This document shows, piece by piece, positions 3,506 to 39,400 of a DNA stretch of 64,000 nt. Both the position numbers and the translations under genes were made by a program. Numbering within the stretch: position 1 is the first letter of the stretch; the number at the start of each line of letters is the position of its first letter. A model generated the notes under the pieces. That model was not told the DNA's origin. It saw nothing but the letters and a program-made list of their open reading frames with translations, and made no database searches. The stretch is from IMG/VR virus record IMGVR_UViG_3300046171_000231, positions 124,001 to 188,000 of that record, one strand, 5' to 3'.

Positions 3506-3889
3506 ATGGCAGTTTTTAGTACAAATTTAGTAATATACAAACATACTGACTTTGAGCAAACCTTTGCACTTGAAGATAGTAACACGAATAGTGTCAAAAA
3601 TTTAACAGGTTTTTCTGCCACTTGCAAAATGCAAAGGACATTAAATCTTGGTAGTTTGACAGAGTTTACAATATCATTTTTGAATGATCGAACACTAGGT
3701 AAAGTTAGAATATCATTAACAGATACACAAACAGCAGCGATTGAAGAAGGTAAATATTTTTATGAGCTAATGTTGACTGACCCAAGTAGCGTTGTAGAAA
3801 GAGTAATTGAAGGAATTGTAATCGTAAAACATCCTGTTACTTGGGATTCACCAACTCCCCTAACTCCTTTTGACGCTCAAGTTCCTTAA
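3506..3889 (+). CDS. Probable virion structural protein, paralog of 3126..3488
   Basis: NLTGFSATCKMQR...GKVRISLT..QT..IEEGKYFYELML mirrors the preceding gene; CATAAATA at 3484-3491. Confidence 0.6.
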   Translation: MAVFSTNLVIYKHTDFEQTFALEDSNTNSVKNLTGFSATCKMQRTLNLGSLTEFTISFLNDRTLGKVRISLTDTQTAAIEEGKYFYELMLTDPSSVVERVIEGIVIVKHPVTWDSPTPLTPFDAQVP

Positions 3890-21793: not shown

Positions 21794-22789
21794 ATGAATA
21801 CTGTTCTTTTGCAATATTATCTAACTTTTCCATTATATCATCTGTAAAATATTTGTCTGGATTTTTATATATTTCTTTAGCATATACTTTTTTTCCATTC
21901 ATTTCATATCTACCTGCAACATTTTTCCAGAGACCACCTATCTCCCCTAAGTCTAAAAGACCATAGTATTTGTCTAGTCCTCTTTCATCATAATAAAGAC
22001 GAACTTCAACTTCTTTATTTTCTCTACTTAAACGTGACTTATGAGTCTTTGCCTTGATAATGTTTCCAATGACATCTTTTCCGTCTTTTTCTTTCTTCTT
22101 GGTAAGATAGATGATTGTAGATGCAGCATACTTGAGACCGCTGCCTCCTCCCATTTCTTTAGTTGGGACGTAAGATCCGATAACGTCATAGGTGTGATTA
22201 GTTACTATAAGTGGAATGTTTGCTTGACCAAGTTTGAGTGTAAGCATTCTGAATGCTCCTTTGACAAGTTGAGATTTGGTCATATCTCGAACCATCTTAT
22301 CATTTAATGTGTCGGTAATTTCTTTCTCAGTTGAAAGCATACCTAGAGAGTCTAACACAAACATACAAGGTTTGCGATTCTCTTCTTCTGTCTTAAGGTA
22401 TATATCTACTGCCTTTAGTGCCTTACCACGAAACTGTTCGATTCGTTACGACATTGACAACAACCAACCGTGCTGTATCAATTCCACGAGACTGCCAAAA
22501 GTCCTTTGGTGACTGCAGCTTCAGTGTCAAAATAGAGGCAATACCCATCAGGATTAGTGTCCAAAAAGTTTTTGACGACAGCGAGAGAGAAGTAAGTCTT
22601 TCCAGTAGAGCTTTCGCCAGCGATAGCAGTGATCTTATTACTAGAAACACCACCATAAATGGAACCGCTAACCACTGCATTAAAGATGTGTGATCCTGTG
22701 TCGATGAATCTTTCTGTTTCATCTATGTCTGCTGCAATTTTGGTGAAATCATCTCCGATCTCCTTAACTATTTCTTTCAAAAAATCCAT
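21780..22789 (-). CDS. uvsX: RecA-like recombinase UvsX with two +1 frameshifts (~22492 and ~22442)
   Basis: Walker [10 protein letters not shown] and VLDSLGML. Removing one G and one A restores [34 protein letters not shown]. Confidence 0.9.
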
Positions 22790-22989: not shown

Positions 22990-23160
22990 TTATATTGATA
23001 TTCCTTTTTCTTCACGCAGTATTTTTTTGTAAGGTCCGTCAGGGTTGTTATCTCTAACATCTTTGACTTCTTTCAGTAAATGATACAATCGTGCATCTCC
23101 TCCAAGAGAAAGAGCATTTACGATTGTTTCTAAATCGTTATCATTAATAGGTAATTCCAT
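22990..23160 (-). CDS. Small hypothetical protein (56 aa)
   Basis: MELPINDNDLETIVNALSLGGDARLYHLLKEV...; TAATG overlap with the gp43 stop. Confidence 0.6.
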   Translation of the reverse strand: MELPINDNDLETIVNALSLGGDARLYHLLKEVKDVRDNNPDGPYKKILREEKGISI

Positions 23161-25661
23161 TAGGAAAAAAATAGTTCTAAGTTTACAGTTTTTTCAACAT
23201 TCCACCCAATTGCATCTAAGATTGTTCTGAGTGGTTCAACAAAACTTTTGTCAAATTGTAAGTCGTAATCGACATACTTTTCAAGGTCAAGTTCTCTAGG
23301 AAAATCTTGAATGAATGATATTACATTCTCTTGAATAATATTTGGTTTTTTCAAATAGAGAAATTTGACCTTTTCTCCATTTCCAATAAGTGAGTACTTA
23401 TTATCAATCTTTTTCGCTTTAACATAATGATTAAACAATAATGCACCCCGTATATGTATAGGAGTTCCCTTTGCATAAATCGTAGAAGTCGCTTTATACT
23501 TCTGAACATTTGATGCAGTGCGAGGAAAAGCAATCTCTTCTGGTGGTAGCTTTTTGAATTGTTTTCTGGACTCATCAATAAATTCAATGACATCTTCTTC
23601 AGTGCCATTCATCATCAACTTGAGTGCACTTTTAATTAATGCACGACAAGGTGCAGGAGTTGAAGATTTAACTGCTTCAATACCCATCATCTTGAGATTT
23701 GGTTTTTCATATCGAACACCTTCACTATCCCACACATTTAAAATATATCTTTTCTTTGCTGTCCAGATGCCACGGTCTGCGATATTCTCTCGCTTCATAA
23801 ACATCTTTTGATCATAAGCATTTACGTAGTTCGCCAACGTTTCATAAGAACTCGTAATATACTTCTCAAGTTCCATTTCACAGATCTTATTAAGGAACGA
23901 CACAATGCTTTGATTAGTCGTCTCTCTCCCTTTGTATACAGTTTCGACCAAAGGACCAAGATTAAGGTAGATGGAATCAGTATCGCTGGCAATAACATAG
24001 TCTTCACCCTCCGTTTTGAGTATTTTGTTTAAGTATGCATTCATTTTGTTTTCTATCCAACGAATAGAAACCTGCCCTGATAAGGTAATTGCTTCCGCAT
24101 TTGCTAATTTGTAATAGCGGAAGTATTGATTACCAATCGCACCATAGGCAGAGTTAAGAGAAATCTTCTTTGCCATCTGGATATTATTGCAACGGGCAAT
24201 CTCTTTAGTCAGTTCAACTGTAGGAGTTTTTTCATATGCTTTCTTTGCCTTAATCATCCTCTTCTTGAAGATGACCCTTTCATTATACATCTTCTCCATC
24301 AGCTCTGGTAAGAAACCACGAACATCCTTTCGATACATTGCACCATTTGCACAAACAGCATTTTCTTTGTACATCTCAAAAGTCAAATCTTCATTAAGAA
24401 TTTTATCAACCGTAACAGAAGGATGTCTTGTATCTAATAAAGTTTCTGGTGAAATATTGTATTGCATAATCAAATGCGGATATAGACTATTCAAGTCAAA
24501 TGATACTACCCAATCATATTTGCCAGGTATTGGTTCTTTTACATATGCACCTGCATACTTATCATTTTTATGTGACCTATTCTTTGGAGGTATAACAATA
24601 TTTCTTCTCTTCAAATAATTGTAGATAATCGTATCCCACATTCTTACCTGATAAAATACATCTTCATAGTTGACCTTCGCATCATATGCCATTGTCAATG
24701 CAAGCTCAATCAACTTCATCTTGTCCTCAAGACGGTCAACAAGTTCCACGTCAATGATGTTATATTCTACAAACTTTTGCCATCCTTGAGTATAGAAGTC
24801 TTTGAATGTATCAAATTCTGAGTGGTCAAGTTTCTTTTGTCCAAGTTCAACAGATGCAATATAATCTAATCGATATGACTCTTGTGCCTTATAAGTAAAC
24901 TTCTTATATAAGTCAAGATAATCTAACTGCGATACACCACCAATATCATAAGAAATTTGTTTACGACCCATTATATGAGTTTCTTCTTCAGTTACGAGAC
25001 CCCAAGGTGACATTCTCTTCTTAAGTTTCTCACCAAGTATTCTGTCAATACGACGACAGAGATATGGAATATCATAAAACTTACTATTCCAACCAGTGAT
25101 AACTTCTGGTGTATTATCTTCAATCATCCACCAGTTGATGAAATCTGTTAGAAGTTCATATTCTGTAGTGAATGATTTATAAGTAACATTCTCTTGCTTA
25201 TTATTAAATGCACCAAGACCCCAAGTGCGTATTTGTTTTGTTGTATAATCTTGTAATGAGATAAGTAATATTTCTTCTGCAGCAGATTCTACATCAGGGA
25301 ATCCATATTCTGATTTAACCTCAATATCAATTGTAGTTAATTTAATTCTTTCAATATCAAACTTTAATTCTTGCTCTGGATATTTGTCCGAAATATATTG
25401 ATAGATAAATCTTTCATTACCATAGATGTTAAAGTTTTCAACCTCATTATAATTTTTAATAAAGTCTCTACATTCACGAACTGTACCAGGTTCAATTGGT
25501 TCAACGGGCAAACCGTCAAGTGTTTTATATTTTGTCTTTCTTTTTGAATCTACAAATAATGTTGGATAGAACTTTTCACGAGTAGCAAAGTGCTTTCCAT
25601 CTTCATATCCACGAACCAAGAAATTATCTCCGACCATTTGGACGTTGGTATAAAATCTCAT
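23160..25661 (-). CDS. gp43: Family B DNA polymerase (T4 gp43)
   Basis: Exonuclease DIE; SFDLNSLYP, KISLNSAYG and ASDTDS motifs. Confidence 0.98.
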   Translation of the reverse strand: MRFYTNVQMVGDNFLVRGYEDGKHFATREKFYPTLFVDSKRKTKYKTLDGLPVEPIEPGTVRECRDFIKNYNEVENFNIYGNERFIYQYISDKYPEQELKFDIERIKLTTIDIEVKSEYGFPDVESAAEEILLISLQDYTTKQIRTWGLGAFNNKQENVTYKSFTTEYELLTDFINWWMIEDNTPEVITGWNSKFYDIPYLCRRIDRILGEKLKKRMSPWGLVTEEETHIMGRKQISYDIGGVSQLDYLDLYKKFTYKAQESYRLDYIASVELGQKKLDHSEFDTFKDFYTQGWQKFVEYNIIDVELVDRLEDKMKLIELALTMAYDAKVNYEDVFYQVRMWDTIIYNYLKRRNIVIPPKNRSHKNDKYAGAYVKEPIPGKYDWVVSFDLNSLYPHLIMQYNISPETLLDTRHPSVTVDKILNEDLTFEMYKENAVCANGAMYRKDVRGFLPELMEKMYNERVIFKKRMIKAKKAYEKTPTVELTKEIARCNNIQMAKKISLNSAYGAIGNQYFRYYKLANAEAITLSGQVSIRWIENKMNAYLNKILKTEGEDYVIASDTDSIYLNLGPLVETVYKGRETTNQSIVSFLNKICEMELEKYITSSYETLANYVNAYDQKMFMKRENIADRGIWTAKKRYILNVWDSEGVRYEKPNLKMMGIEAVKSSTPAPCRALIKSALKLMMNGTEEDVIEFIDESRKQFKKLPPEEIAFPRTASNVQKYKATSTIYAKGTPIHIRGALLFNHYVKAKKIDNKYSLIGNGEKVKFLYLKKPNIIQENVISFIQDFPRELDLEKYVDYDLQFDKSFVEPLRTILDAIGWNVEKTVNLELFFS

Positions 25662-25909
25662 TACGCAGTTAGTTCAGTATATTTGTCCTTAATTGTACCA
25701 TTTGGGTCTGCAATCGTCAATATATCTTCAGCACGAATCATAAACTCTGTTTGATTTGTAATATCTGCTTTCCAAGGCTTCATATCATCAATACCATTAT
25801 AGACATATGGTTTGATTAGTTTACAATTAGGATCACCCAATTGAGCATCTACTTCTACAATCTCTGTAATCAAAGTACAGTGAGCATTTAACATTACACA
25901 TTTAATCAT
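25661..25909 (-). CDS. Hypothetical protein (Sm-like beta fold)
   Basis: Resembles the adjacent upstream ORF; coupled to the gp43 start. Confidence 0.6.
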   Translation of the reverse strand: MIKCVMLNAHCTLITEIVEVDAQLGDPNCKLIKPYVYNGIDDMKPWKADITNQTEFMIRAEDILTIADPNGTIKDKYTELTA

Positions 25910-26249
25910 CTTCTTCTTCCTCTTCTTCCTTCATTTCAAAAGTCTTCAATTTATCTAGGTATAATTGAGTTACTGAATTAAGCGGTTCAACAACAGTTAA
26001 TACACTATCTACAGGTATTATCATTTGGGTATCTTGAGATAATATTATCCACGGTAGTAAAGTAACATTAATACCAAAGTCACCATCTTTCTTTTCTTCC
26101 TCAGTCATAAATTGTTTTTCATTTATCTCAACTGTATGAGGATTTTCAAGTAAGTATGCTTGTGGTTCATCTTTTCCCTCTGCAGATAATTCTTTCATTT
26201 CTGAAATTAATTGCTCACCAGTTTTAAGTAAAGTAAGTTTGATTGACAT
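25902..26249 (-). CDS. Hypothetical protein (Sm-like beta fold)
   Basis: MSIKLTLLKTGEQLISE...LLENPH...PWIILS pattern. Confidence 0.65.
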   Translation of the reverse strand: MSIKLTLLKTGEQLISEMKELSAEGKDEPQAYLLENPHTVEINEKQFMTEEEKKDGDFGINVTLLPWIILSQDTQMIIPVDSVLTVVEPLNSVTQLYLDKLKTFEMKEEEEEEDD

Positions 26250-26265
26250 TTTTCTATCTAATTAA

Positions 26266-26323
26266 CTGGTAGATTCCTATAGCCGCTTATGCTGAACCTA
26301 CCAAAGGGCATAACCGCAGCCAG
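26266..26323 (-). ncRNA. Putative H-type pseudoknot in a 5' leader
   Basis: UUAUGC/GCAUAA stem crossed by a 10-bp helix UGGUAGGUUC/GAAUCUACCA; the G-U pairs are only valid on the minus strand. Confidence 0.65.
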
Positions 26324-26341
26324 TATTTCTCTGACAAATAT

Positions 26342-26370
26342 ATTATAGCACAACTTTTCCAATTGTCCAA
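26342..26370 (-). promoter_or_regulatory. Sigma70-type promoter overlapping the purM 3' end
   Basis: TTGGAC-17 nt-TATAAT with an extended -10 TG. Confidence 0.6.
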
Positions 26371-27275
26371 CTTTTATATCCAAATGCATCTATTGTATCG
26401 TGAGTATCAATTTCACTTTGCTCTGGTATTACCACACAATACCCAATACCAAGATTAAAAACTTTTTTCATTTCCTCTTCTGGTATCTCACCTGCTGACA
26501 TTATCTTTTGAAATATTTTAGGTAACGGCCAAGAATTATAATCAATATCTGCCTTTAATCCATCAGGTAAACATCGTGGTAGATTCTCTGGAATACCACC
26601 CCCAGTAATATGTGCCATACCTAATATAGGAACTTCATTTATAAGTTCCATTACAAGTGGAGCATAGATATGAGTTGGTGTTAAAAGTTTTTTCGTTGCT
26701 TTTAATTTTTTCTGTCTTATTAAATGATTAACTAAACTGTAACCATTGCTATGAATACCACTACTTTCGATTCCGATTATAAGGTCTCCTTCTTGAATAA
26801 TTGAACCATCAATTATTTCAGATGACTCAACGATTCCTGTACTAAATCCTGCGAGGTCAATATCAAAAGTCATTGGATGTTCAGCAGTTTCACCACCAAT
26901 AAGTTCAACACCTGCTAACTCACAACCTTTAATGATACCTGTCATAATATCATCTACAACAGGGTTTATTGTGTTTAGAGAAATGTAATCTAAAAAATAT
27001 AAAGGTTTTGCACCACAAGTAATAATATCATTGACACACATTGCAACCAAGTCAATACCTATAGTTTTATAGTTATCTAAACGATTACAAATACAAATCT
27101 TTGTTCCAACTCCATCAGTACCAGAAACTAAAATAGGTTCCTCATATCCACGAGGAACCTTATACATACCACCGAATCCACCGATGGTAGGTACTTTTTG
27201 TTTTAGTCTTTCAACGAAAGCATTACCTGCTTCAATATCAACACCCGATGATTTATAGGTAGTTTTTTCTTGCAT
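26343..27275 (-). CDS. purM: Phosphoribosylformylglycinamidine cyclo-ligase (AIR synthetase)
   Basis: YKSSGVDIEAGN, GTDGVGTK, MCVNDI, GGETAE, HSNGYSL and HITGGG motifs. Confidence 0.95.
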   Translation of the reverse strand: MQEKTTYKSSGVDIEAGNAFVERLKQKVPTIGGFGGMYKVPRGYEEPILVSGTDGVGTKICICNRLDNYKTIGIDLVAMCVNDIITCGAKPLYFLDYISLNTINPVVDDIMTGIIKGCELAGVELIGGETAEHPMTFDIDLAGFSTGIVESSEIIDGSIIQEGDLIIGIESSGIHSNGYSLVNHLIRQKKLKATKKLLTPTHIYAPLVMELINEVPILGMAHITGGGIPENLPRCLPDGLKADIDYNSWPLPKIFQKIMSAGEIPEEEMKKVFNLGIGYCVVIPEQSEIDTHDTIDAFGYKSWTIGKVVL

Positions 27276-27687
27276 GATGTTCTGGAACTATCTTACCCAA
27301 TTTGACGGTAAGTAATCCATCTTTAAATAGAACCTCTCTGACTTCAATATCTTCTGATAGTGACCAGGTTCTGTTGAAAGATCTCTGAGCCAGTCCTTGA
27401 TAGACATACTCGGATTCTTTCTCTTTTTCTTTTTTCTTTCCTTCAACAATAAGTTTTCCATATTCAGTATAAACATGAAGTTCATTTTTACTAAATCCTG
27501 CTAATGCTATTTCTAGTATTGATTCAACATTATTTACGTGAATAAGATTGTAGGGTGGATAGTTTGTTGCGGTTTCGTAAGAATTGAAAAAATTATCTAG
27601 GTATGAGTCCATACCAATTCCATTCTTAGAAATAATCTTCATTAGTTCTGGAAGATTAGCAGAGTGATACTTCTGTAGTGAAGTCAT
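27253..27687 (-). CDS. hsp20: Small heat shock protein (Hsp20/IbpA-like)
   Basis: NYPPYNL, LEIALAGF, GLAQRSFNRTW and DGLLTV alpha-crystallin motifs. Confidence 0.93.
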   Translation of the reverse strand: MTSLQKYHSANLPELMKIISKNGIGMDSYLDNFFNSYETATNYPPYNLIHVNNVESILEIALAGFSKNELHVYTEYGKLIVEGKKKEKEKESEYVYQGLAQRSFNRTWSLSEDIEVREVLFKDGLLTVKLGKIVPEHHARKNYL

Positions 27688-27750
27688 AATAGTTCTCCTT
27701 TAAAAGCGAGTGTAAATTGTGTCCCCGAAGGCGACATTACTAATTATAAC
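27688..27750 (-). promoter_or_regulatory. hsp20 extended -10 promoter and structured 5' UTR
   Basis: TGT-TATAAT at 27743-27751; cUUCGg hairpin; CUCGCUUU-U-AAAGGAG hairpin occluding the Shine-Dalgarno. Confidence 0.6.
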
Positions 27751-27785
27751 ACTAACGTCTTAATTAAGAGTGTAGAAAACCGCAT

Positions 27786-27830
27786 AAAAAAAGACCCTCT
27801 GCCCCACTCTCTGAGTTGCATCTTAGGTCT
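27786..27830 (-). terminator. Putative intrinsic terminator downstream of manA
   Basis: AGACCU...GGGUCU stem followed by U7. Confidence 0.55.
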
Positions 27831-28020
27831 AAAAAAGGAGGGAGGTTGGGTTCCTGTGTACCAACAAAAGATGGGCATTACTACAGAGTAAATACATCTT
27901 TGCCTGAGACCCGACTGGTAAGTCGATTCTGACTCGCATCAGCAGCACCACCTGTGTCTCATCACCTTAACCAGCGATTGCCAGTAAGTTTATTCAGTCA
28001 CTCCCATTGTTGCGTCCAAC
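27831..28020 (-). ncRNA. manA: Probable manA RNA motif
   Basis: GC-rich, structured ~190-nt intergenic RNA (GGGAGUGACUGAAUAAACUUACUGGC...GGUGAUGAGACACAGGUGGUGCUGCU...CCUCCC). Matches my recollection of manA and its known ibpA/hsp20 context; not confirmed by a covariance-model search. Confidence 0.7.
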
Positions 28021-28026
28021 AATATA

Positions 28027-28060
28027 AGTATAGCATAAAAAAAGGAGGTGTCAACCCTCC
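28027..28060 (-). promoter_or_regulatory. regA terminator with overlapping sigma70 promoter driving manA
   Basis: GGAGG-GTTGACA-CCTCC-T7 hairpin; TTGACA-16 nt-TATACT with TG extension. Confidence 0.7.
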
Positions 28061-28491
28061 CCTTCTTCTTTCTTCTTTTTAGCACCAATATTGTATTTCG
28101 TTTCTAAAATCCATTCACCTTTATCTTTAAATGATAACACTTTGATTTGATTAAGTGGTGCAATGTCCTGTATACGAACTACATCGACCACACCAACCAA
28201 TCCCCAATCAGCAAGAAGCTGAGCAATACGATTGCGACGCTGAACATCGTTAGAAGTAAGGTTAGCGTGTTTCCCGTCAAGAGCAAAAAGTTCTTTAAAG
28301 TGGACAAGATAGTACCTCCCTTGCTTATGAAGTATGTGACAACTTTGATATATTTTCTTTTCTTTCCTACTTGCTACACCAATTCTTGTGAGAGTTTCTC
28401 TGACTTTCAGGAAATCATCTGGTTCATTCAATGTTACCTCCACCATTTGGTCGGGAGACCATGTGACGACAGGTTCTTTAACAACACTCAT
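28051..28491 (-). CDS. regA: Translational repressor RegA
   Basis: DFLKVRETLTRIG...QSCHILHKQGRYYLVHFKELF. Confidence 0.95.
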   Translation of the reverse strand: MSVVKEPVVTWSPDQMVEVTLNEPDDFLKVRETLTRIGVASRKEKKIYQSCHILHKQGRYYLVHFKELFALDGKHANLTSNDVQRRNRIAQLLADWGLVGVVDVVRIQDIAPLNQIKVLSFKDKGEWILETKYNIGAKKKKEEGEG

Positions 28492-28857
28492 TTCGCTCCT
28501 CCAGTATCAAATTTAGATTTTATAAAGTTGAGTTGTTTTTTTGTCAGAATTTTTAAAGCTTGTTTTGCTTTTTCGTTACTATAACCATAATAACGTTTTA
28601 CATAATCAAGGTCTTTAATCATATCCTTACGAAGCCAAGGAGAGAATCTCTTCTTAGTTCTGAGAGTATTTATATAAAAGTCGTATTGCATACGCTTTGG
28701 TAAGAAATTATACTTATTCATTTCGTTTGCAAAAAGGACTGCATCTAAGTGTCCAGAGAAACAACGATTAATAATATATGGAGGATAATCTTTCTCTACT
28801 AAAGGGTCTTCATCTATTAAATTTTTCTTTGTTTGGTTGATTGAATTTAACCAATCT

Positions 28858-28868
<11 letters not shown>
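28488..28868 (-). CDS. gp62: Clamp loader small subunit (T4 gp62)
   Basis: [11 protein letters not shown]...YPPYIINR...QYDFYIN...RFSPW; probable true start at 28868. Confidence 0.88.
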
Positions 28869-31607
<2,739 letters not shown>

Positions 31608-31608
31608 A

Positions 31609-31776
31609 TTATCCATTCACCATTTCATCATCCATAGTTTTATTTCGGATGACAATTGTATTACTATCATAGTCAGGATAAAATTCAATTATATCCTCGG
31701 TGTCCCAACACATTTCCTCATAAAGCATATTGAGTTTTTGCATGTCTTGGTACATATCTGATGGTCTTTCATCCAT
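31609..31776 (-). CDS. Small acidic hypothetical protein (55 aa)
   Basis: [32 protein letters not shown]...; abuts the dam stop. Confidence 0.6.
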
Positions 31777-32634
31777 TTAAAAAATTCCTAGTTTGTAATT
31801 AAAAAGAAGTAATTCCTTTCTAGTTTTTTGATTTCTCATATACTCCCCGACAGAACGCATTGTATATGTCAAATCAAATTCAGCAACATTCCAATTTGTA
31901 AATCTATCTTTTACTAATTGGTCTGAATTGTAACTTATAAGCATTTCAGAATTATATATTTCACAAGCTTTTGCAAAATTATCGTGGTCAAACTTTTTAT
32001 GCATTGAACCCTTTCTACCATACAAATTATCCTTAATATCGTATGGTGGGTCAAGATAAATAAATGTTTTTTCTTTATCTCCTAACAAATGACGATAATC
32101 AACATTAGTAATATACCAATCCTCAATCAGTTTACTATAAACTGGTAATTTATCAATACCTCTCATTGAGAAGTTTGCATCACTGGCTTGTGCTGAAAAG
32201 GATGATGATTCAGTAAGACCGCTGAAAGAACATTTGTTTATAATGTAGAAACAAACAGCACGGTCTTTATCTACAATATCAAGGTCATATAATTTTTCTT
32301 TTGCATCTTCAAACAATCCTTTCGCAGAACCACGATCAGGAAATCTTGATTTTAATTGTTGCAATTCACTATGAACATAGTCACCATTAACCTGTAACTG
32401 TAACCAGAAATTATATAATGGTTCATACAAATCATTAACTACAATCTTAAGTTTTGGATACTTCTTAGTAATATGTAATGCTACACTTCCACCACCTAAA
32501 AATGGTTCATAATAAACATCATAAAATCTTAAGTCTGGAATAAATGGTTCCATCTTTTTGCAAGCACGAGACTTGCCACCAGGATAACGAAGTGGTGTCT
32601 TATATGATTTAAGTGATTTAATCGTCGTGGTCAT
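31777..32634 (-). CDS. dam: DNA adenine methyltransferase (Dam/D12 class)
   Basis: LRYPGGKS, EPFLGGGSV and YLDPPY motifs. Confidence 0.92.
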   Translation of the reverse strand: MTTTIKSLKSYKTPLRYPGGKSRACKKMEPFIPDLRFYDVYYEPFLGGGSVALHITKKYPKLKIVVNDLYEPLYNFWLQLQVNGDYVHSELQQLKSRFPDRGSAKGLFEDAKEKLYDLDIVDKDRAVCFYIINKCSFSGLTESSSFSAQASDANFSMRGIDKLPVYSKLIEDWYITNVDYRHLLGDKEKTFIYLDPPYDIKDNLYGRKGSMHKKFDHDNFAKACEIYNSEMLISYNSDQLVKDRFTNWNVAEFDLTYTMRSVGEYMRNQKTRKELLLFNYKLGIF

Positions 32635-32764
32635 CCCAAGGGTCAGTTAAATTTTCATTAGCAAAGAATCCCTTATACACACCATAAGCAGCTAACAAAA
32701 TAGTAATAACTGCAATTGATATACCAAATGTGTAATCAGGATTTAAATTAAGATGCGGAATCAA
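32618..32764 (-). CDS. psbN: Photosystem II biogenesis protein PsbN (48 aa, TTG start, not in ORF track)
   Basis: Single TM helix then YGVYKGFFANENLTDPWDDHDD*; GGAGG Shine-Dalgarno upstream of the TTG. Confidence 0.8.
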   Translation of the reverse strand: MIPHLNLNPDYTFGISIAVITILLAAYGVYKGFFANENLTDPWDDHDD

Positions 32765-32985
32765 TATATAATTCCTCCACCTGTTCTTCTCTGTCTTAAT
32801 TCTTCAAGTTCAATTTTAATCTCAATTATTTCGGTAAGGTCATTTACTGAATTAGACATCGATTGATATCCTGCACCAACAAAGATTTGTCCTGCCATTA
32901 CTGCAACAGTGCAAGCACCCCAGAACAAATAATATTGATAAGATTTGATTTGTGCTTTAGTTTTAGCGAAAGTTGATTTAGTCAT
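32761..32985 (-). CDS. Hypothetical membrane protein
   Basis: TM segment YYLFWGACTVAVMAGQIFVGAG followed by a coiled coil. Confidence 0.6.
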   Translation of the reverse strand: MTKSTFAKTKAQIKSYQYYLFWGACTVAVMAGQIFVGAGYQSMSNSVNDLTEIIEIKIELEELRQRRTGGGIIY

Positions 32986-33269
32986 TATATAATTAATTTT
33001 TTAGTAGGTGTTGATAACTTACCAAACATTGTATTATATTGTTCGATAATCTCTTCTTGAGGATTTCCTTCATACACAACATATTTTTTAGTAACTTCAA
33101 TTTTATCTTTTTGAAGTAAAGGAGACCAAGGAGCAAAAGCAATTCTTCCCTCTTGTGGAGAAGGAACTGCTACGATTGGATTTTCGATTACATAAGAATC
33201 ATTTGTTTCTTCAACGATGTCGGTGATTACATCTTCACCAGACCACATACGAATTAGTTTTACAGTCAT
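32985..33269 (-). CDS. Conserved phage hypothetical protein (Sm-like fold)
   Basis: VKLIRMWSGEDVI...ENPIVAV...FAPWSP pattern. Confidence 0.7.
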   Translation of the reverse strand: MTVKLIRMWSGEDVITDIVEETNDSYVIENPIVAVPSPQEGRIAFAPWSPLLQKDKIEVTKKYVVYEGNPQEEIIEQYNTMFGKLSTPTKKLII

Positions 33270-33288
33270 TTAAATTTCCATTAATTAT

Positions 33289-33317
33289 ATTTTAGCAAGT
33301 AAACATTAAAAAGTCAA
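33289..33317 (-). promoter_or_regulatory. Sigma70-type promoter
   Basis: TTGACT-17 nt-TAAAAT with TG extension, abutting the doxX stop. Confidence 0.65.
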
Positions 33318-33740
33318 TTATTCAAAAGGTAAATGTGGTCTTTTGAATTTTATTCTAAACTTTCTTAAAAATATATCAAGTGCAAAGTCTCCTCCACCAT
33401 AACAAAGGACACAGAATGCACCCCCAAAGTATAGTATTAAAAGTTCAAGTAAGTAGATATTAAAACCTGATGTGGCAACTGCGTGATATATTGCAACTGA
33501 TATTGTCCCAACAATAGATAATGCACCAAGTCTTGTAAGCAATCCAACAATTATTAACCAACTACCATATATTTCAGAGTATGCAGCAATATATGATAAG
33601 AAAATTGGAAATGGTAATCCAAGAGGTTTTACAAAAGCGTTTGCAAAATTTTCTATATCTGCTGTTTTTTCGTATCCGTGATGTATCAACATAGTTCCTA
33701 TTGATAATCTTAGAATTAATAAACCGAAAGATTTAATCAT
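33318..33740 (-). CDS. DoxX family membrane protein
   Basis: LILRLSIGTMLIHHGYEK...EIYGSWLIIVGLLTRLGA; four TM helices. Confidence 0.85.
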   Translation of the reverse strand: MIKSFGLLILRLSIGTMLIHHGYEKTADIENFANAFVKPLGLPFPIFLSYIAAYSEIYGSWLIIVGLLTRLGALSIVGTISVAIYHAVATSGFNIYLLELLILYFGGAFCVLCYGGGDFALDIFLRKFRIKFKRPHLPFE

Positions 33741-34678
33741 TTGAATTCACACTCCACCATAATTTCTGTTAACGCTGCCAAAAGATTAATTTCTTGATCT
33801 GCGACGAACGCAATTTGGTATTGATATTTTGCAATAATAAGGACAGCAGCAGGTATAGTGCTATGCTCCAAGGAATCATATAAGCTATCGTAAATACGAC
33901 GCAATAACATAGAAGTGTCGTTGTCCAAGTTGGAAACAACCCACTTACGAACTTCCGAAAAGTTTTTTTGTTTGAGACTTTTAATGAGATCATTTACTGC
34001 AACATCTGAGAAAACTGCTAATATACCACTATCTATTTTTCCACTTACTGAGTATCTCTGACACTCATTTAATACTCTTCTCCAATCAGGAAAATGACTA
34101 TTAATTAATTGTGCTACAACTTTTTTATCTGCCTCTATCTTTTCTTGTTCAAGAATATTTGTAAGTCTTGAAAAGAATTGAGTTGCTATTGCGGGTTTGT
34201 CTCTTTTGTGTATAGAGAAATCAACAACACTGCACCGAGAATGGAGTGGCTCAATAATCTTGTTTTTGTAGTTGCAGGTAAAGATAAACCTACAGTTTTT
34301 TGAGAACTCCTCAATAGACGCTCTGAGAAGGAGCTGTACATCGGAAGTGGTATTGTCTGCTTCATCAATGATGATGACTTTATGTTTCGACTCACTTGTA
34401 AGAGAGACGGTAGATGCAAAGTTCTTTGCGTTGTTCCGAACAGTGTCCAGAAAGCGTCCTTCATCCGATCCATTAATAACATAAAAATCTGCTCCAAGTT
34501 GATGGCACAATGCCTTTGCTACTGTGGTCTTACCAATACCTGGTGGACCTGACAATAACATATTTGGTATCTCACCTCTTTCAACAAAATCTTGAAATGT
34601 TTTCTTTATACCTTGCGGTAGAATACATTCATCAATTGTCTTGGGTCTGTATTTTTCAACCCATATAAAATCACTCAT
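33737..34678 (-). CDS. gp44: Clamp loader large subunit (T4 gp44)
   Basis: WVEKYRP, GPPGIGKT, IIDEAD and HSRC motifs. Confidence 0.95.
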   Translation of the reverse strand: MSDFIWVEKYRPKTIDECILPQGIKKTFQDFVERGEIPNMLLSGPPGIGKTTVAKALCHQLGADFYVINGSDEGRFLDTVRNNAKNFASTVSLTSESKHKVIIIDEADNTTSDVQLLLRASIEEFSKNCRFIFTCNYKNKIIEPLHSRCSVVDFSIHKRDKPAIATQFFSRLTNILEQEKIEADKKVVAQLINSHFPDWRRVLNECQRYSVSGKIDSGILAVFSDVAVNDLIKSLKQKNFSEVRKWVVSNLDNDTSMLLRRIYDSLYDSLEHSTIPAAVLIIAKYQYQIAFVADQEINLLAALTEIMVECEFK

Positions 34679-34902
34679 TATTTAAAACCTTTTGATTTTG
34701 GTTTTGGTTTGTCAAGAACATGAATAACTGTTCCTTGAAACCAAGGTGAATTACAATTATTCCACCAATATTCTTGAACCTCATCCCAAGATTCTACCAC
34801 AAAAGATTTATTTTGACAAACTATTCGATAATGATGACGATCATAAGAACCGTCAGAAGTTTGAGAAAAATATCTTGGGTCATCTTTAGCAATTAATTGC
34901 AT
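34678..34902 (-). CDS. Hypothetical protein
   Basis: 74-aa ORF coupled to gp44. Confidence 0.6.
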   Translation of the reverse strand: MQLIAKDDPRYFSQTSDGSYDRHHYRIVCQNKSFVVESWDEVQEYWWNNCNSPWFQGTVIHVLDKPKPKSKGFK

Positions 34903-35365
34903 TTTCTTTTGCCCTCCATTCTTTTCTCATTCTAACATACACATCACTTTTCGCAACAATATCACGAACTTTTTTAAATACTCTTGCAGATTCAGCATAT
35001 TTACTTGATAAGTTATCTGCTTCTTGAGGTAATACTTCTTTAGTTCCTTTTTTGTATTTCCTACCAGAGTTATGATTCGCATATCTTCTTGCTCTAGTAA
35101 ATCCCATTTCTAAAAATTTACGACACATATCCATACCAATGAAGTCTCCTTCATCACGGTAATCAAGATACAAAGCAAAAATTTTGTTAGAAGATATTAT
35201 TGCTTCTCTAGGAGTTTTGAATCTCCAATGATTACAAATAGTGTTAGTATAAGGGCGAACCAGTAAAACTCCTTGCTCTCCCCTTCCAATACGATAAAGT
35301 TCACGAGTTTCCGTATCTGTAAAATTAAGTTTTTTGTAATCGAGGTCATAGTCAAATTCTTTCAT
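34886..35365 (-). CDS. DUF4385-like protein
   Basis: YRIGRGEQGVLLVRPY...WRFKT...GMDMCRKFLEMGFTRARRYANH. Confidence 0.75.
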   Translation of the reverse strand: MKEFDYDLDYKKLNFTDTETRELYRIGRGEQGVLLVRPYTNTICNHWRFKTPREAIISSNKIFALYLDYRDEGDFIGMDMCRKFLEMGFTRARRYANHNSGRKYKKGTKEVLPQEADNLSSKYAESARVFKKVRDIVAKSDVYVRMRKEWRAKENAINC

Positions 35366-35896
35366 AGCCAATTTGGTTTTTTGGATGGGTCACGTAAATA
35401 ATTAGATGCAGCCCAAGGTTTGGACGATATATAACGTTTGTAAGCAGTAAGAGTGTCAATGCTTGTGTCATATTTAAACTCATCGGGACCTGCGAATGCG
35501 AATGGTGTTGCTTCTCTGTAGGCATAGTAATGTCTTTCCTGTTTTTTCTTCAAACACTTTCTCTGCTGCATTCATTGCAGTTTGACAAGAGTGTACTTTA
35601 CCATACCTATGAGTATACTCTTCAAGTAATCCAAAACCATGTTGAATTAACCACGCAGTGTTTGCAATACTTTCTGCTGCCCAGATAGTGCAAGGATGTC
35701 CTCGAAAGGCACCTTTCTCTGTGTTGTATGGTGTTCCGTCTTTCTTGGGTAATAAATCATTACCCCAATCATAATACCATTTAGAAAAAACTACTGCTAA
35801 CATCTGGCAAGTTTCTAATGGCATTTTGACAATGTGTTTATCAGGTAGAACCTCTGCCGAAACAACAGGGTCAGGGTCTGTCACAAAAATGTTCAT
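35362..35896 (-). CDS. Pyrimidine dimer DNA glycosylase-like (DenV family) with a +1 frameshift near 35523
   Basis: MNIFVTD...DKHIVKMPLETCQML...HPCTIW...Y..RYGKVH; the C-terminus continues in ORF 35362..35571. Confidence 0.7.
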
Positions 35897-35916
35897 AATA
35901 TAAGTTTGATACTTTT

Positions 35917-35945
35917 ATTATAACAGAACATTTATTATTTGACAA
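35917..35945 (-). promoter_or_regulatory. Sigma70-type promoter overlapping the oxygenase 3' end
   Basis: TTGTCA-17 nt-TATAAT with TG extension. Confidence 0.7.
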
Positions 35946-36456
35946 TATAATAATTTATATTTACCACTATTCTTCTATCTTTATCCGTACAACTGACAGG
36001 AGCATGTTTTGTTGAGCAGTCAAATGTGACCATTCTATTTGCAACACTATTTACAAATGTACCATCTTCAAATTTTGTACCTCCATTATTAGTATTCATA
36101 TACAATATAGAAGTGGTAATTTTATCTTTTCTTTTATCTTCATAGTCTGTATGAAACCATCCCGTATTTTGCTCTGATGTTTTATAATTACAATTTGCTT
36201 TGAATTTATCTACTCTTTCTACGTTTAATTTTGAAAAACAACTACTACTTTTAAAATAAAAATAGTAGTGGCTATTTGTATCTCCATCTTCTACAAAACC
36301 ATGAATTAACTGAGGAACATTATCTCCTATAAATTTTCCATCAACTACGTTTCCATGACTATGTGGTTGCCAGTACCAAGGAAAATCTCTTCCCTCCATT
36401 TCATTTTTTATTTTATAAAATTCATTATCTGGTAAAAAATTATCAACTATCTTCAT
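35935..36456 (-). CDS. 2OG-Fe(II) oxygenase superfamily protein
   Basis: WFHTD (HxD)...FD...KHA...RIVVNINY. Confidence 0.82.
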   Translation of the reverse strand: MKIVDNFLPDNEFYKIKNEMEGRDFPWYWQPHSHGNVVDGKFIGDNVPQLIHGFVEDGDTNSHYYFYFKSSSCFSKLNVERVDKFKANCNYKTSEQNTGWFHTDYEDKRKDKITTSILYMNTNNGGTKFEDGTFVNSVANRMVTFDCSTKHAPVSCTDKDRRIVVNINYYIVK

Positions 36457-36706
36457 TTTCTTCCAAATCATATTCCCAATCTTCTATTACAATATTAGCA
36501 AACAATCTATCACTAAGTAAGTCTAATTGTTCCTTTGCTTTATCTCTACTCTCTGCATCAAAAGTTAATTCAATGAGTTTATTAATTCTTAAAGTATCTA
36601 CAGTAATATCAGATGCAACTCTATTTACATTCGCTCTTACAGCATTTCCTGCAGCATCAGATACTGACGCTCTTAATCTAATATAAACCTTTGCTTTGAA
36701 TTTCAT
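36443..36706 (-). CDS. purS: Phosphoribosylformylglycinamidine synthase PurS subunit
   Basis: FKAKVYIRLRASVSDAAG...KLIEL...RLFANIVIEDW. Confidence 0.85.
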   Translation of the reverse strand: MKFKAKVYIRLRASVSDAAGNAVRANVNRVASDITVDTLRINKLIELTFDAESRDKAKEQLDLLSDRLFANIVIEDWEYDLEENEDS

Positions 36707-36707
36707 T

Positions 36708-38252
36708 TTAAGAATAAATGTTATCTTTTAGAAATTGATAGTGAGTTGGTTGATTATCAACCCACTTCATAATAGTCTTACGATGTTGTTGCCATTGTTC
36801 ATGTAATTTATCTATATTTTTATCATTTGAAATTTGTTGAAGAACATATTTTTCATTTAAAGGATTATTACCTAAACCAGCTGCGATATATAACCACCCA
36901 TCATTTTCACTTGAGTCAAACTTCATAATTTTATTCATAGAATCTTTACTTGTACTAACGTTTAAACAATCTCTCCAATATTCTGTATCTGTTCTTTGAG
37001 ACAGTGTATAGTGTGCAAGCACAAAATTTTTGTAAGTATCCATCATTGCATCTGTAGAATTATTAAAAAAGTCAATATCAAATTGTGTTACGAATGAATC
37101 TCTTCTTACAAGAGTATCACATAATACGATAGCACATTGATGAGATGTTAATAATCCAGTGGATTCTAATGGTTCTAGGAAACCATATGACAATCCAATT
37201 GCTACACAATTTTTCTTCCAAGCAACATCATGTTTTCCATGTTTAATTTTTATATGTTCAAATTCTACTTTTTCATCTACTTCAGAATTAAATCCTTTAG
37301 ATTTTTTCTTAAAAAATCTTTTACTTAAATATTGTTTAAATTCATTTTCTGCTTTTTCTTGACTTGTGTATTTACTACTATAAACATATCCTGTTCCAAT
37401 TCTATCCCAGAGAGGAATATTCCAACACCATCCATTTTCAAGAGCAACGTTATCTGTGTAAGTAGACATTTCACTCTCAATATTATTATACTCAATGTTT
37501 GCTTTTATTGCACTATCATTAAACAATTCATTTTGAAATGAGCGAAATGGAACATTTAAATATTTTTCTAAAAGTAAAGATTTAAATCCTGTACAATCAA
37601 CATATAAATCTGATTTAATACTTTCATTATCGACAGTTATTAATTTGCAAATACTTTCATCAGAATTCAATATAATATCTTTAATTTCAGTTATTTTATG
37701 AATTACTCCATTCGGAATACAATGTTCATCTCTTAAATATTTTCCAAATAATTCTGCATCTAAATGATAAGCTATATCATCTGCTAAATTAAAATTACCT
37801 ATACTCATATCTGAATTAACAGGTATTTTAGATTTCTCTGCTATAAATGTATTATGATTTACAAATCTAGAAAACTCTTCATATGGATATAATTTTTTTC
37901 CAAATTTAGAACGGAGTAGAAAAAATTCAATTGCATTATTTTTGTAAGTATCTTTTAAGTCATATTTTCCAAATGGATATTGAAATCTTTCTCCTTGACC
38001 TTCTCTCCAGTTTTTAAATGCAATAGATGTCTTATAAGTTGCTTTACATTTTGGCATCCACTCACTATCATCTAATTCTAATCTATTAAGTAATTCATTA
38101 AATTTTTGTAAGGTTGATTCACCAACACCTATAGTTTTTATCTTTTGAGATTCTATTAAGGTAATTTTTATATTTGAATACTTAGATAATAAGGCTGCTG
38201 TCATCCATCCTGCAGAACCACCACCAACTATAGTGACAGATTTTATCTTCAT
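36708..38252 (-). CDS. Flavin-dependent (tryptophan halogenase-like) halogenase, intact
   Basis: IVGGGSAG, GVGEST, AYHLDA, GWCWNIP, FLEPLEST and HY...RTDTEYW motifs. Confidence 0.9.
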   Translation of the reverse strand: MKIKSVTIVGGGSAGWMTAALLSKYSNIKITLIESQKIKTIGVGESTLQKFNELLNRLELDDSEWMPKCKATYKTSIAFKNWREGQGERFQYPFGKYDLKDTYKNNAIEFFLLRSKFGKKLYPYEEFSRFVNHNTFIAEKSKIPVNSDMSIGNFNLADDIAYHLDAELFGKYLRDEHCIPNGVIHKITEIKDIILNSDESICKLITVDNESIKSDLYVDCTGFKSLLLEKYLNVPFRSFQNELFNDSAIKANIEYNNIESEMSTYTDNVALENGWCWNIPLWDRIGTGYVYSSKYTSQEKAENEFKQYLSKRFFKKKSKGFNSEVDEKVEFEHIKIKHGKHDVAWKKNCVAIGLSYGFLEPLESTGLLTSHQCAIVLCDTLVRRDSFVTQFDIDFFNNSTDAMMDTYKNFVLAHYTLSQRTDTEYWRDCLNVSTSKDSMNKIMKFDSSENDGWLYIAAGLGNNPLNEKYVLQQISNDKNIDKLHEQWQQHRKTIMKWVDNQPTHYQFLKDNIYS

Positions 38253-38512: not shown

Positions 38513-38733
38513 TAATCAAATATTCCGTATTGTGTTAGATCGTATTTTACTTTAGCAATACCTTCTTCTTTTACTCTATTAGGTTGTCCTATTTTTGCTA
38601 GAATATCAGCAGGTATTTTCTTTTTAGTAATGTCATAGGGTATAGGTGCGTTTGCTACACATACCCTTACACATTCTAATTCTTCATCAGTCAATGGTAT
38701 CATTGTCCAATCAATTTTATCCATATCAACCAA
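38512..38733 (-). CDS. Hypothetical protein
   Basis: 73-aa ORF following gp45. Confidence 0.55.
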   Translation of the reverse strand: MVDMDKIDWTMIPLTDEELECVRVCVANAPIPYDITKKKIPADILAKIGQPNRVKEEGIAKVKYDLTQYGIFD

Positions 38734-39400
38734 ATGTTGAATCTGGTTCTAGTGCTATAAAGTACTTAAGATTATATTGCTTATTTGTAAACTCGGAAAG
38801 TAATTTAGATGAAATTACTACATCATATGCACCAGGTATAATTTTAATATTTTCTACCTTAAAGTTAAATTCAAAAGTCTGGTCTGTCTCTCCAACATAA
38901 ACTGCATATTCATTCGATGTATCATTCTTCTTATCACGAACAACCATATGAATATCTCCATCTTTACCTAGAACAGATAAGTCAGGTAGTTGATATACTG
39001 CTGCTGCCTTTACAAGTTTTTCTAATGAAGTACTTTCTAATTGAAAAGTTACTTCTTGAGTAGGTAAATTAATCTCCTTATCTGGTGGAGCAATAATTAC
39101 CTGTGGGTCTGCATAAAAATACTTGACTCTTCTTTTACCTTCTTCAATTGAAATGTATGCATCTTTTGAGAAGTCAAGATTAGGGTCTTGATGTAAACTT
39201 AATCCATTTAAGAACTGATTGAGATCATATATTGCAACGTCTCTAGGAAAGTCCTCTGGAATATCTGCTTCAGCAAGAATATTCTTTGCAACTGATATTG
39301 TGCGAAGTTGGTTCCCTTCTTTAACAAGAATTGAATTATTAATTCCTGCAAAGTTTTTAAGAACTGTAAGTGTACTGTCTGATAATTTCATGAAATGCAT
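38726..39400 (-). CDS. gp45: Sliding clamp (T4 gp45)
   Basis: MKLSDSTLTVLKNFAGINNSIL...IYDLNQFL...YFIALE. Confidence 0.95.
   Translation of the reverse strand: MHFMKLSDSTLTVLKNFAGINNSILVKEGNQLRTISVAKNILAEADIPEDFPRDVAIYDLNQFLNGLSLHQDPNLDFSKDAYISIEEGKRRVKYFYADPQVIIAPPDKEINLPTQEVTFQLESTSLEKLVKAAAVYQLPDLSVLGKDGDIHMVVRDKKNDTSNEYAVYVGETDQTFEFNFKVENIKIIPGAYDVVISSKLLSEFTNKQYNLKYFIALEPDSTFG

Follow-up and report, generated by a model that had tools for sequence, protein, structure and literature searches.

A glycine dehydrogenase gene, purM and purS among the replication genes of an uncultivated P-SSM2-like cyanomyovirus, best seen as independent host-derived insertions

The genes purM and purS are established among the host genes carried by myo-cyanophages (PMC9983427), and glycine dehydrogenase appears in a table of a metagenome study as a cyanophage gene that is over-represented at HOT and in the Red Sea (PMC3686209). 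Glycine dehydrogenase is also annotated in the isolates P-HM1, P-HM2 and MED4-213, but in the literature that we searched we found that single table entry and no functional study of a cyanophage gcvP. A structured RNA belongs to the same setting, as manA RNAs have been reported in the 5′ untranslated regions of cyanophage nucleotide-synthesis genes and ibpA chaperone genes (Weinberg et al. 2010, PMC2864571). Here, we describe a 64,000-nt stretch of DNA, referred to below as the window, comprising bases 124001–188000 of the 235,761-bp IMG/VR virus record IMGVR_UViG_3300046171_000231 (rated complete by CheckV), in which gcvP (the gene for the P-protein of the glycine cleavage system), purM and purS all lie on the minus strand, interspersed among the replication genes gp43, gp62, gp44 and gp45 over a span of 10.4 kb.

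Gene order was established from Pfam and NCBIfam profile matches and from comparison with the Prochlorococcus phage P-SSM2. The results uphold the identities, the coordinates and the placement among gp45, gp44, gp62 and gp43 that an earlier note, made from the letters of the window, had given to gcvP (28858–31616, in four pieces; Pfam GDC-P and GcvP2_C, TIGR00461), purM (26343–27275; Pfam AIRS and AIRS_C, TIGR00878) and purS (36443–36706; Pfam PurS, TIGR00302). The same note had joined the three into one dispersed module, and this was not borne out, as the genes assort separately in related phages. MED4-213 and P-HM2, the two isolates checked, have gcvP and lack purM and purS, P-SSM2 has purM and purS and lacks gcvP, and a 59-kb relative with the order gcvP-gp62-regA-hsp20 has neither purM nor purS; the co-occurrence across related phage genomes that would mark a co-inherited module is not found. 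The three are best seen as host-derived genes that were inserted independently into a plastic part of the replication region. The whole explanation that we favor, and consider likely, is that the window comes from an uncultivated P-SSM2-like T4-type cyanomyovirus (the 235.8-kb record) and covers its replication region, that gcvP, purM and purS are independent insertions, and that gcvP is intact in nature, the insertions and deletions (indels) that split it being errors of the record.

The three genes also appear to occupy three different transcription contexts: gcvP lies in the packed gp44–gp62 block, purM lies behind a promoter-like site and a manA RNA, and purS follows a halogenase gene. Around gcvP the local order is gp44, DoxX, small open reading frames (ORFs), dam, orf55, gcvP, gp62 and regA, in frames that overlap or abut. 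The 55-aa orf55 (31609–31776, minus strand, from the ORF list; function unknown, with no family match) overlaps the start of gcvP by 8 nt and abuts dam, and the likely start of the clamp-loader small subunit gene gp62 (28488–28868, minus strand; Pfam Phage_clamp_A) is an ATG at 28868, 11 nt inside the gcvP end. Residues 1–124 of a 126-aa P-SSM2 ORF align to gp62 at 28868–28497 with 82% identity. At least 314 stretches in IMG/VR encode a GcvP relative; among the best 80 of these, which were examined, about 70 carry gcvP between dam-orf55 and gp62-regA, and 63 carry an orf55 homologue immediately upstream of gcvP. As gcvP is embedded in the clamp-loader operon without spacers, its co-transcription with the replication genes is plausible, and to this extent the earlier suggestion of co-expression with replication stands; it is less likely to extend to purM, in front of which stands a separate leader containing a manA RNA.

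Contigs from two seawater metagenomes and two RNA libraries were mapped on 26300–31700 (5,401 letters). Single low-depth RNA-library contigs join 28868 to 31623 (gcvP being replaced by 16 other letters) and 26319 to 27251 (purM being gone at the gene borders); the flanking sides of both joints measure only 20–21 letters, making them weak evidence for relatives without gcvP or purM.

The purM gene is intact. Its 310-aa product scores 352 bits on TIGR00878 (cut-off 236; model positions 2–330 of 332) and is 65% identical to P-SSM2 PurM, and the gene is the sole AIRS_C gene of the genome. The ATG at 27275 opens MQEKTTYKSSGVDIEAGN, a typical PurM N-terminus, and the junction sequence reads as the earlier note had described it, with the purM start lying within the last 23 nt of hsp20 (a 23-nt overlap, the hsp20 stop being at 27253–27255). 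The small heat-shock protein gene hsp20 itself (27253–27687, minus strand; Pfam HSP20) is 65% identical to its P-SSM2 counterpart and is separated from the translational repressor gene regA (28051–28491, minus strand; Pfam Translat_reg, E=6e-45; 93% identity to P-SSM2 RegA) by a 363-nt spacer (27688–28050). In this spacer, Infernal places a manA RNA (RF01745; 27835–28022, minus strand) that covers the full model (1–192) and scores 188 bits, the gathering score being 55.2; the RNA is a candidate riboswitch in the hsp20-purM 5′ leader. T-rich hairpin-like sequences follow the motif. Upstream of the RNA, just after the regA stop, stands a sigma70-like promoter site on the minus strand (TTGACA-16-TG-TATACT, 28054–28027; 11/12, a consensus match only). 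As this spacer, with its sigma70-like site and manA RNA, precedes hsp20-purM, purM is probably not simply read with the clamp-loader genes. Sigma70-like sites number 70 against 85 expected and terminators 6 against 5.5, neither being above chance. The T4-type late promoter TATAAATA occurs 8 times in the window (8.07 expected), and the only copy upstream of any of the three genes lies inside gp62.

The purS gene is likewise intact (87 aa). Its product matches Pfam PF02700 (E=2.5e-18; 66.5 bits against 22.2) and, over positions 1–80 of 80, TIGR00302 (60.8 bits; cut-off 39), and on NF004630 it reaches 69.5, slightly below the 75-bit cut-off. It is 60% identical to a 108-aa P-SSM2 protein annotated ‘purL’ (PSSM2_173, L087 8051–8374), which itself matches Pfam PurS; judged from these matches, the P-SSM2 label ‘purL, 5-phosphoribosylformylglycinamide amidotransferase’ looks like a misannotation of purS. 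In the window, purS follows, after a one-base gap, a tryptophan-halogenase gene of the flavin-dependent family (36708–38252, minus strand, 514 aa; Pfam E=8.5e-107). The halogenase gene, situated between gp45 and gp44, has 29% identity to a P-SSM2 halogenase that is located elsewhere in that genome.

Pathway partners of these genes are missing from the phage. PurL and PurQ, which the earlier note had found to be absent from the window, are absent from the whole 235,761-bp record as well (purM is the single AIRS_C gene, and GATase_5 is lacking), and with them the partners for a three-part formylglycinamidine ribonucleotide (FGAM) synthase. Neither purN nor purH was found in the whole record, so that of the genes which the note had wished to see sought across the genome only thyX is present, outside the window. 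Also not found in the whole record were gcvH, gcvT, SHMT and FolD. The phage would need the host H, T and L proteins, as the note had supposed, because it is without gcvH and gcvT; in an uncultured Prochlorococcus (L098 3039–6383), the gene immediately upstream of gcvP (969 aa) is gcvH (129 aa).

With these data, we consider it unlikely that gcvP, purM and purS form one selected, co-expressed module that turns photorespiratory glycine into one-carbon (C1) units for deoxynucleoside triphosphate (dNTP) synthesis during replication. The three genes do lie on one strand within 10.4 kb among replication genes (the minus strand also carries nearly all the long ORFs), gcvP is embedded in the clamp-loader operon, the phage thyX would be a consumer of methylene-tetrahydrofolate (methylene-THF), and such a module would be consistent with the textbook biochemistry of glycine cleavage and purine synthesis. 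However, gcvP assorts independently of purM and purS in P-HM2, MED4-213 and P-SSM2, and the 59-kb gcvP relative is without purM; purM has its separate leader, purS is placed differently in P-SSM2, and PurN, PurH, FolD and SHMT, by which C1 units would be linked to purines, are all missing from the phage. The glycine cleavage system, moreover, consumes glycine that PurD also needs, and a restraint of the Calvin cycle, as reported for cyanophages, would give less, not more, photorespiratory glycine. The route from photorespiratory glycine through C1 units to dNTPs is plausible, its photorespiratory link being pure conjecture that nothing in the sequence supports.

The gcvP gene is not read in one uninterrupted frame in the record but falls into four pieces in three frames, and these together are colinear with residues 1–912 of the 914-aa MED4-213 protein, with ∼74% amino acid identity to the MED4-213 and P-HM2 proteins. 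On TIGR00461, the two large pieces, N-terminal and C-terminal, cover positions 1–300 (379 bits) and 504–939 (652 bits), the sum exceeding the 859-bit cut-off, and the two middle pieces align to residues 307–386 and 390–503 of MED4-213 GcvP. The C-terminal piece also aligns with 4LGL, the solved P-protein of Synechocystis (E=3e-169). The motif around the pyridoxal-phosphate (PLP)-binding lysine, codon 688 of the bridged reading, aligns to that of 4LGL, and the C-terminal LVCSC is conserved in the window protein, picocyanobacterial GcvP and 4LGL. Nucleotide alignment resolves the breaks into exactly three single-base indels: a base missing at ∼30691, a T missing in a T run at ∼30446–30455, and a base added at ∼30105–30106. 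Bridging these shifts with X leaves a reading free of in-frame stops. An intron, a programmed frameshift and a different genetic code were ruled out as the cause of the split, as the pieces are contiguous and colinear, the breaks are of a single base and relatives do not share them. In nature, the phage gcvP is most likely an intact gene of ∼919 aa.

Several lines of sequence comparison indicate that the three indels are most likely errors of the record rather than signs of gene decay. All 70 of the related IMG/VR contigs that span the three sites are in frame there; among the 80 contigs the only frame change anywhere in gcvP is in L016 (∼3529–3550, residues 556–562), away from the three sites of the window. 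The closest contig (L007), with 95.5% DNA identity and the same gene neighbors, has gcvP in one open frame. Among the mapped contigs, near-identical ones from other samples (0–4 mismatches) have one letter more within 30191–30510 and within 30649–30878, and one letter fewer at 30103/30107, restoring the gcvP frame. The record itself is also broken elsewhere. A record-wide scan, in which each P-SSM2 ORF of at least 90 aa was compared with the whole record, gave 20 frameshift junctions within 109 kb of P-SSM2-alignable coding sequence, in the genes for the gp17 large terminase, psbA, uvsX, phoH, a helicase, sugar epimerases, glycosyltransferases and gp7 (six junctions); nucleotide alignment confirmed 1-nt indels in four of these, gp17, psbA, uvsX and phoH (five indels). 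Two of the 20 junctions are inside the window, in uvsX (∼22442–22496) and in the PSSM2_151-like/Pyr_excise gene (∼35522). As a viable phage cannot have terminase, psbA, uvsX, gp7 and the others all broken, these point to record error, and by this count the record carries roughly one indel error per 5 kb of conserved coding sequence. Pseudogene and frameshift calls in it are accordingly not to be taken at face value.

Selection on gcvP agrees with this reading. Between the window and the closest contig, the ratio of nonsynonymous to synonymous rates (omega, dN/dS) is 0 over codons 1–308; past the first shift, it is 0.044, 0.055 and 0.039 in three successive segments, where dS is 0.28 and there are 14 amino acid changes in 605 codons. 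The phage gcvP is therefore under strong purifying selection, and a gene old enough to have gathered three indels should show relaxed constraint, not an omega of ∼0.05.

Against our explanation stand the following points. The best public sequencing run contained only 0.60 of the words sampled from the record, and the check on the indels was made indirectly, through contigs of other samples. The density of indels in gcvP, 3 in 2.76 kb, is high against the 0.5 expected from the record mean (Poisson P=0.015), and two of the three lie outside homopolymers. RNA-library contigs cover the region, and such contigs are no proof of transcription; enzyme activity with host partners, flux direction and expression timing are matters that we infer. 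The indel points are those that would favor a real and very recent inactivation of gcvP in this phage lineage, leaving a pseudogene and a dead glycine branch of the module: the three frame-breaking indels fall within 600 nt, do not compensate one another and reach six times the mean density of the record, and the weak contig joint from 28868 to 31623 suggests relatives that lack exactly gcvP and hence a dispensable gene. We nevertheless give such inactivation little credence. Indels cluster elsewhere in the record too (6 in ∼3 kb of gp7), the frameshifts in its indispensable genes cannot all be real, and gcvP has no stops or other lesions. The earlier note had itself named real gcvP frameshifts, and thus a pseudogene, as the finding that would overturn its proposal; that objection most likely fails, with relatives in frame, essential genes equally broken and omega so low.

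A maximum-likelihood tree of GcvP was built from the N-terminal 309 residues of 99 sequences (quick search; SH-aLRT support; root not inferred). All 19 phage GcvP in it group together (support 100), P-HM2 and MED4-213 making up a subclade, and this group is nested in a larger one (support 99) that also contains 11 Prochlorococcus/Synechococcus-type sequences; the other cyanobacteria and the Bacteroidota fall outside the phage/picocyanobacterial group. As far as the sequences tell, the pattern fits a single old acquisition of the phage gcvP from a picocyanobacterial host. Apart from P-HM1, P-HM2 and MED4-213, tblastn of phage records gave only hits of at most 46% identity, in enteric, Listeria or Staphylococcus records and in short fragments; these were set aside as probable host DNA.

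The glycine cleavage system yields methylene-THF, CO2, NH3 and NADH, and the P-protein alone can raise only its first step. In the mechanism that we propose, the phage P-protein would load host lipoyl-GcvH with the aminomethyl group of glycine, releasing CO2, and host GcvT and lipoamide dehydrogenase would then give 5,10-methylene-THF, NH3 and NADH. The C1 units may feed the phage ThyX, for dTMP, and, via host FolD, the two formyl-THF purine steps of the host. Separately, PurS would form the step-4 enzyme together with PurL and PurQ of the host, and PurM would catalyze step 5, making aminoimidazole ribonucleotide (AIR), with purM presumably coupled translationally to hsp20, behind its own promoter-like site and manA leader. 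We put forward tentatively, as a possible role rather than a probable one, that the phage gcvP acts as a metabolic gene during replication, increasing the glycine cleavage flux of the host so that ThyX-dependent dTMP synthesis in an AT-rich phage is supplied with methylene-THF. Glycine is also a PurD substrate, so that both the direction proposed for the flux and its benefit are tentative. That the phage uses GcvP to another end, running the reversible glycine cleavage system backward to make glycine for PurD, releasing NH3 and NADH, or avoiding glycine toxicity when host translation stops, is very unlikely: the P-protein is the sole glycine cleavage component that the phage carries, but a conserved place in the replication operon and a phage ThyX are more in keeping with nucleotide supply.

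The remaining genes of the region, all on the minus strand, complete the replication cluster. Its upstream limit is gp45, the sliding clamp (38726–39400), with 78% identity to P-SSM2 gp45 over residues 3–223. Between purS and the clamp-loader large subunit gene gp44 (33737–34678; Pfam AAA and Gp44_lid, 84% identity to P-SSM2 gp44) lie a denV-like gene of 178 aa (35935–36471), the Pyr_excise/PSSM2_151-like gene (35365–35896), a DUF4385 gene (34886–35371) and a DUF7441 gene (34678–34902). Directly after gp44 comes a gene for a DoxX-family membrane protein (33318–33740; Pfam DoxX, E=1e-18), which is present in only 15 of the 80 related contigs, and then two small ORFs (32761–33269) and the dam-type N6-adenine DNA methyltransferase gene (31777–32634; Pfam MethyltransfD12, 64% identity to P-SSM2 dam). 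At the other end, beyond purM, two DUF6561 genes (25661–26249) precede the gp43 DNA polymerase gene (23160–25661; Pfam DNA_pol_B and exonuclease domain), which has 85% amino acid identity to P-SSM2 gp43 over its full length.

What is new here, modestly, is a P-SSM2-like lineage, abundant in viromes, in which the clamp-loader operon provides a second conserved site for gcvP. Should the phage GcvP truly drive host glycine cleavage during infection, the host routes that cyanophages are known to redirect (pentose-phosphate, photosynthesis and nucleotide metabolism) would come to include glycine and one-carbon metabolism. Given how often gcvP occurs in ocean viromes, the flow of carbon and nitrogen in infected Prochlorococcus could then be affected.

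Compared with the described systems, the window gcvP is of the same phage clade and the same single-chain P-protein type as the genes of P-HM1, P-HM2 and MED4-213 (Eurybiavirus; T4-like gene cluster 540/2105) and differs from them in its place: in these phages, gcvP lies beside nrdB/nrdA, whereas in the window it lies between dam-orf55 and gp62. Picocyanobacterial GcvP and 4LGL have the same full-length architecture (two GDC-P halves and a C-terminal domain) and the same PLP-lysine motif. The picocyanobacterial proteins are the sister group of the phage clade, with 54–60% identity over the N-terminal 309 residues; the host gene (∼969 aa) adjoins gcvH, whereas the phage gene is accompanied by neither gcvH nor gcvT. 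With P-SSM2 the window has in common the order regA, manA RNA, hsp20, purM and gp43. In P-SSM2, the manA RNA stands at the syntenic place (L087 7838–8035), directly upstream of purS-hsp20-PSSM2_175-purM, so that purS follows the RNA directly, within the regA–gp43 interval, and the extra gene PSSM2_175 separates hsp20 from purM; in the window, purS is found 8 kb away, after the halogenase gene. P-SSM2 also has purN and purH, both of which the window genome lacks. The manA RNA of the window (RF01745) leads an ibpA-type chaperone gene (hsp20) and a nucleotide-synthesis gene, as has been reported for this class of RNA, and in this respect no difference was found.

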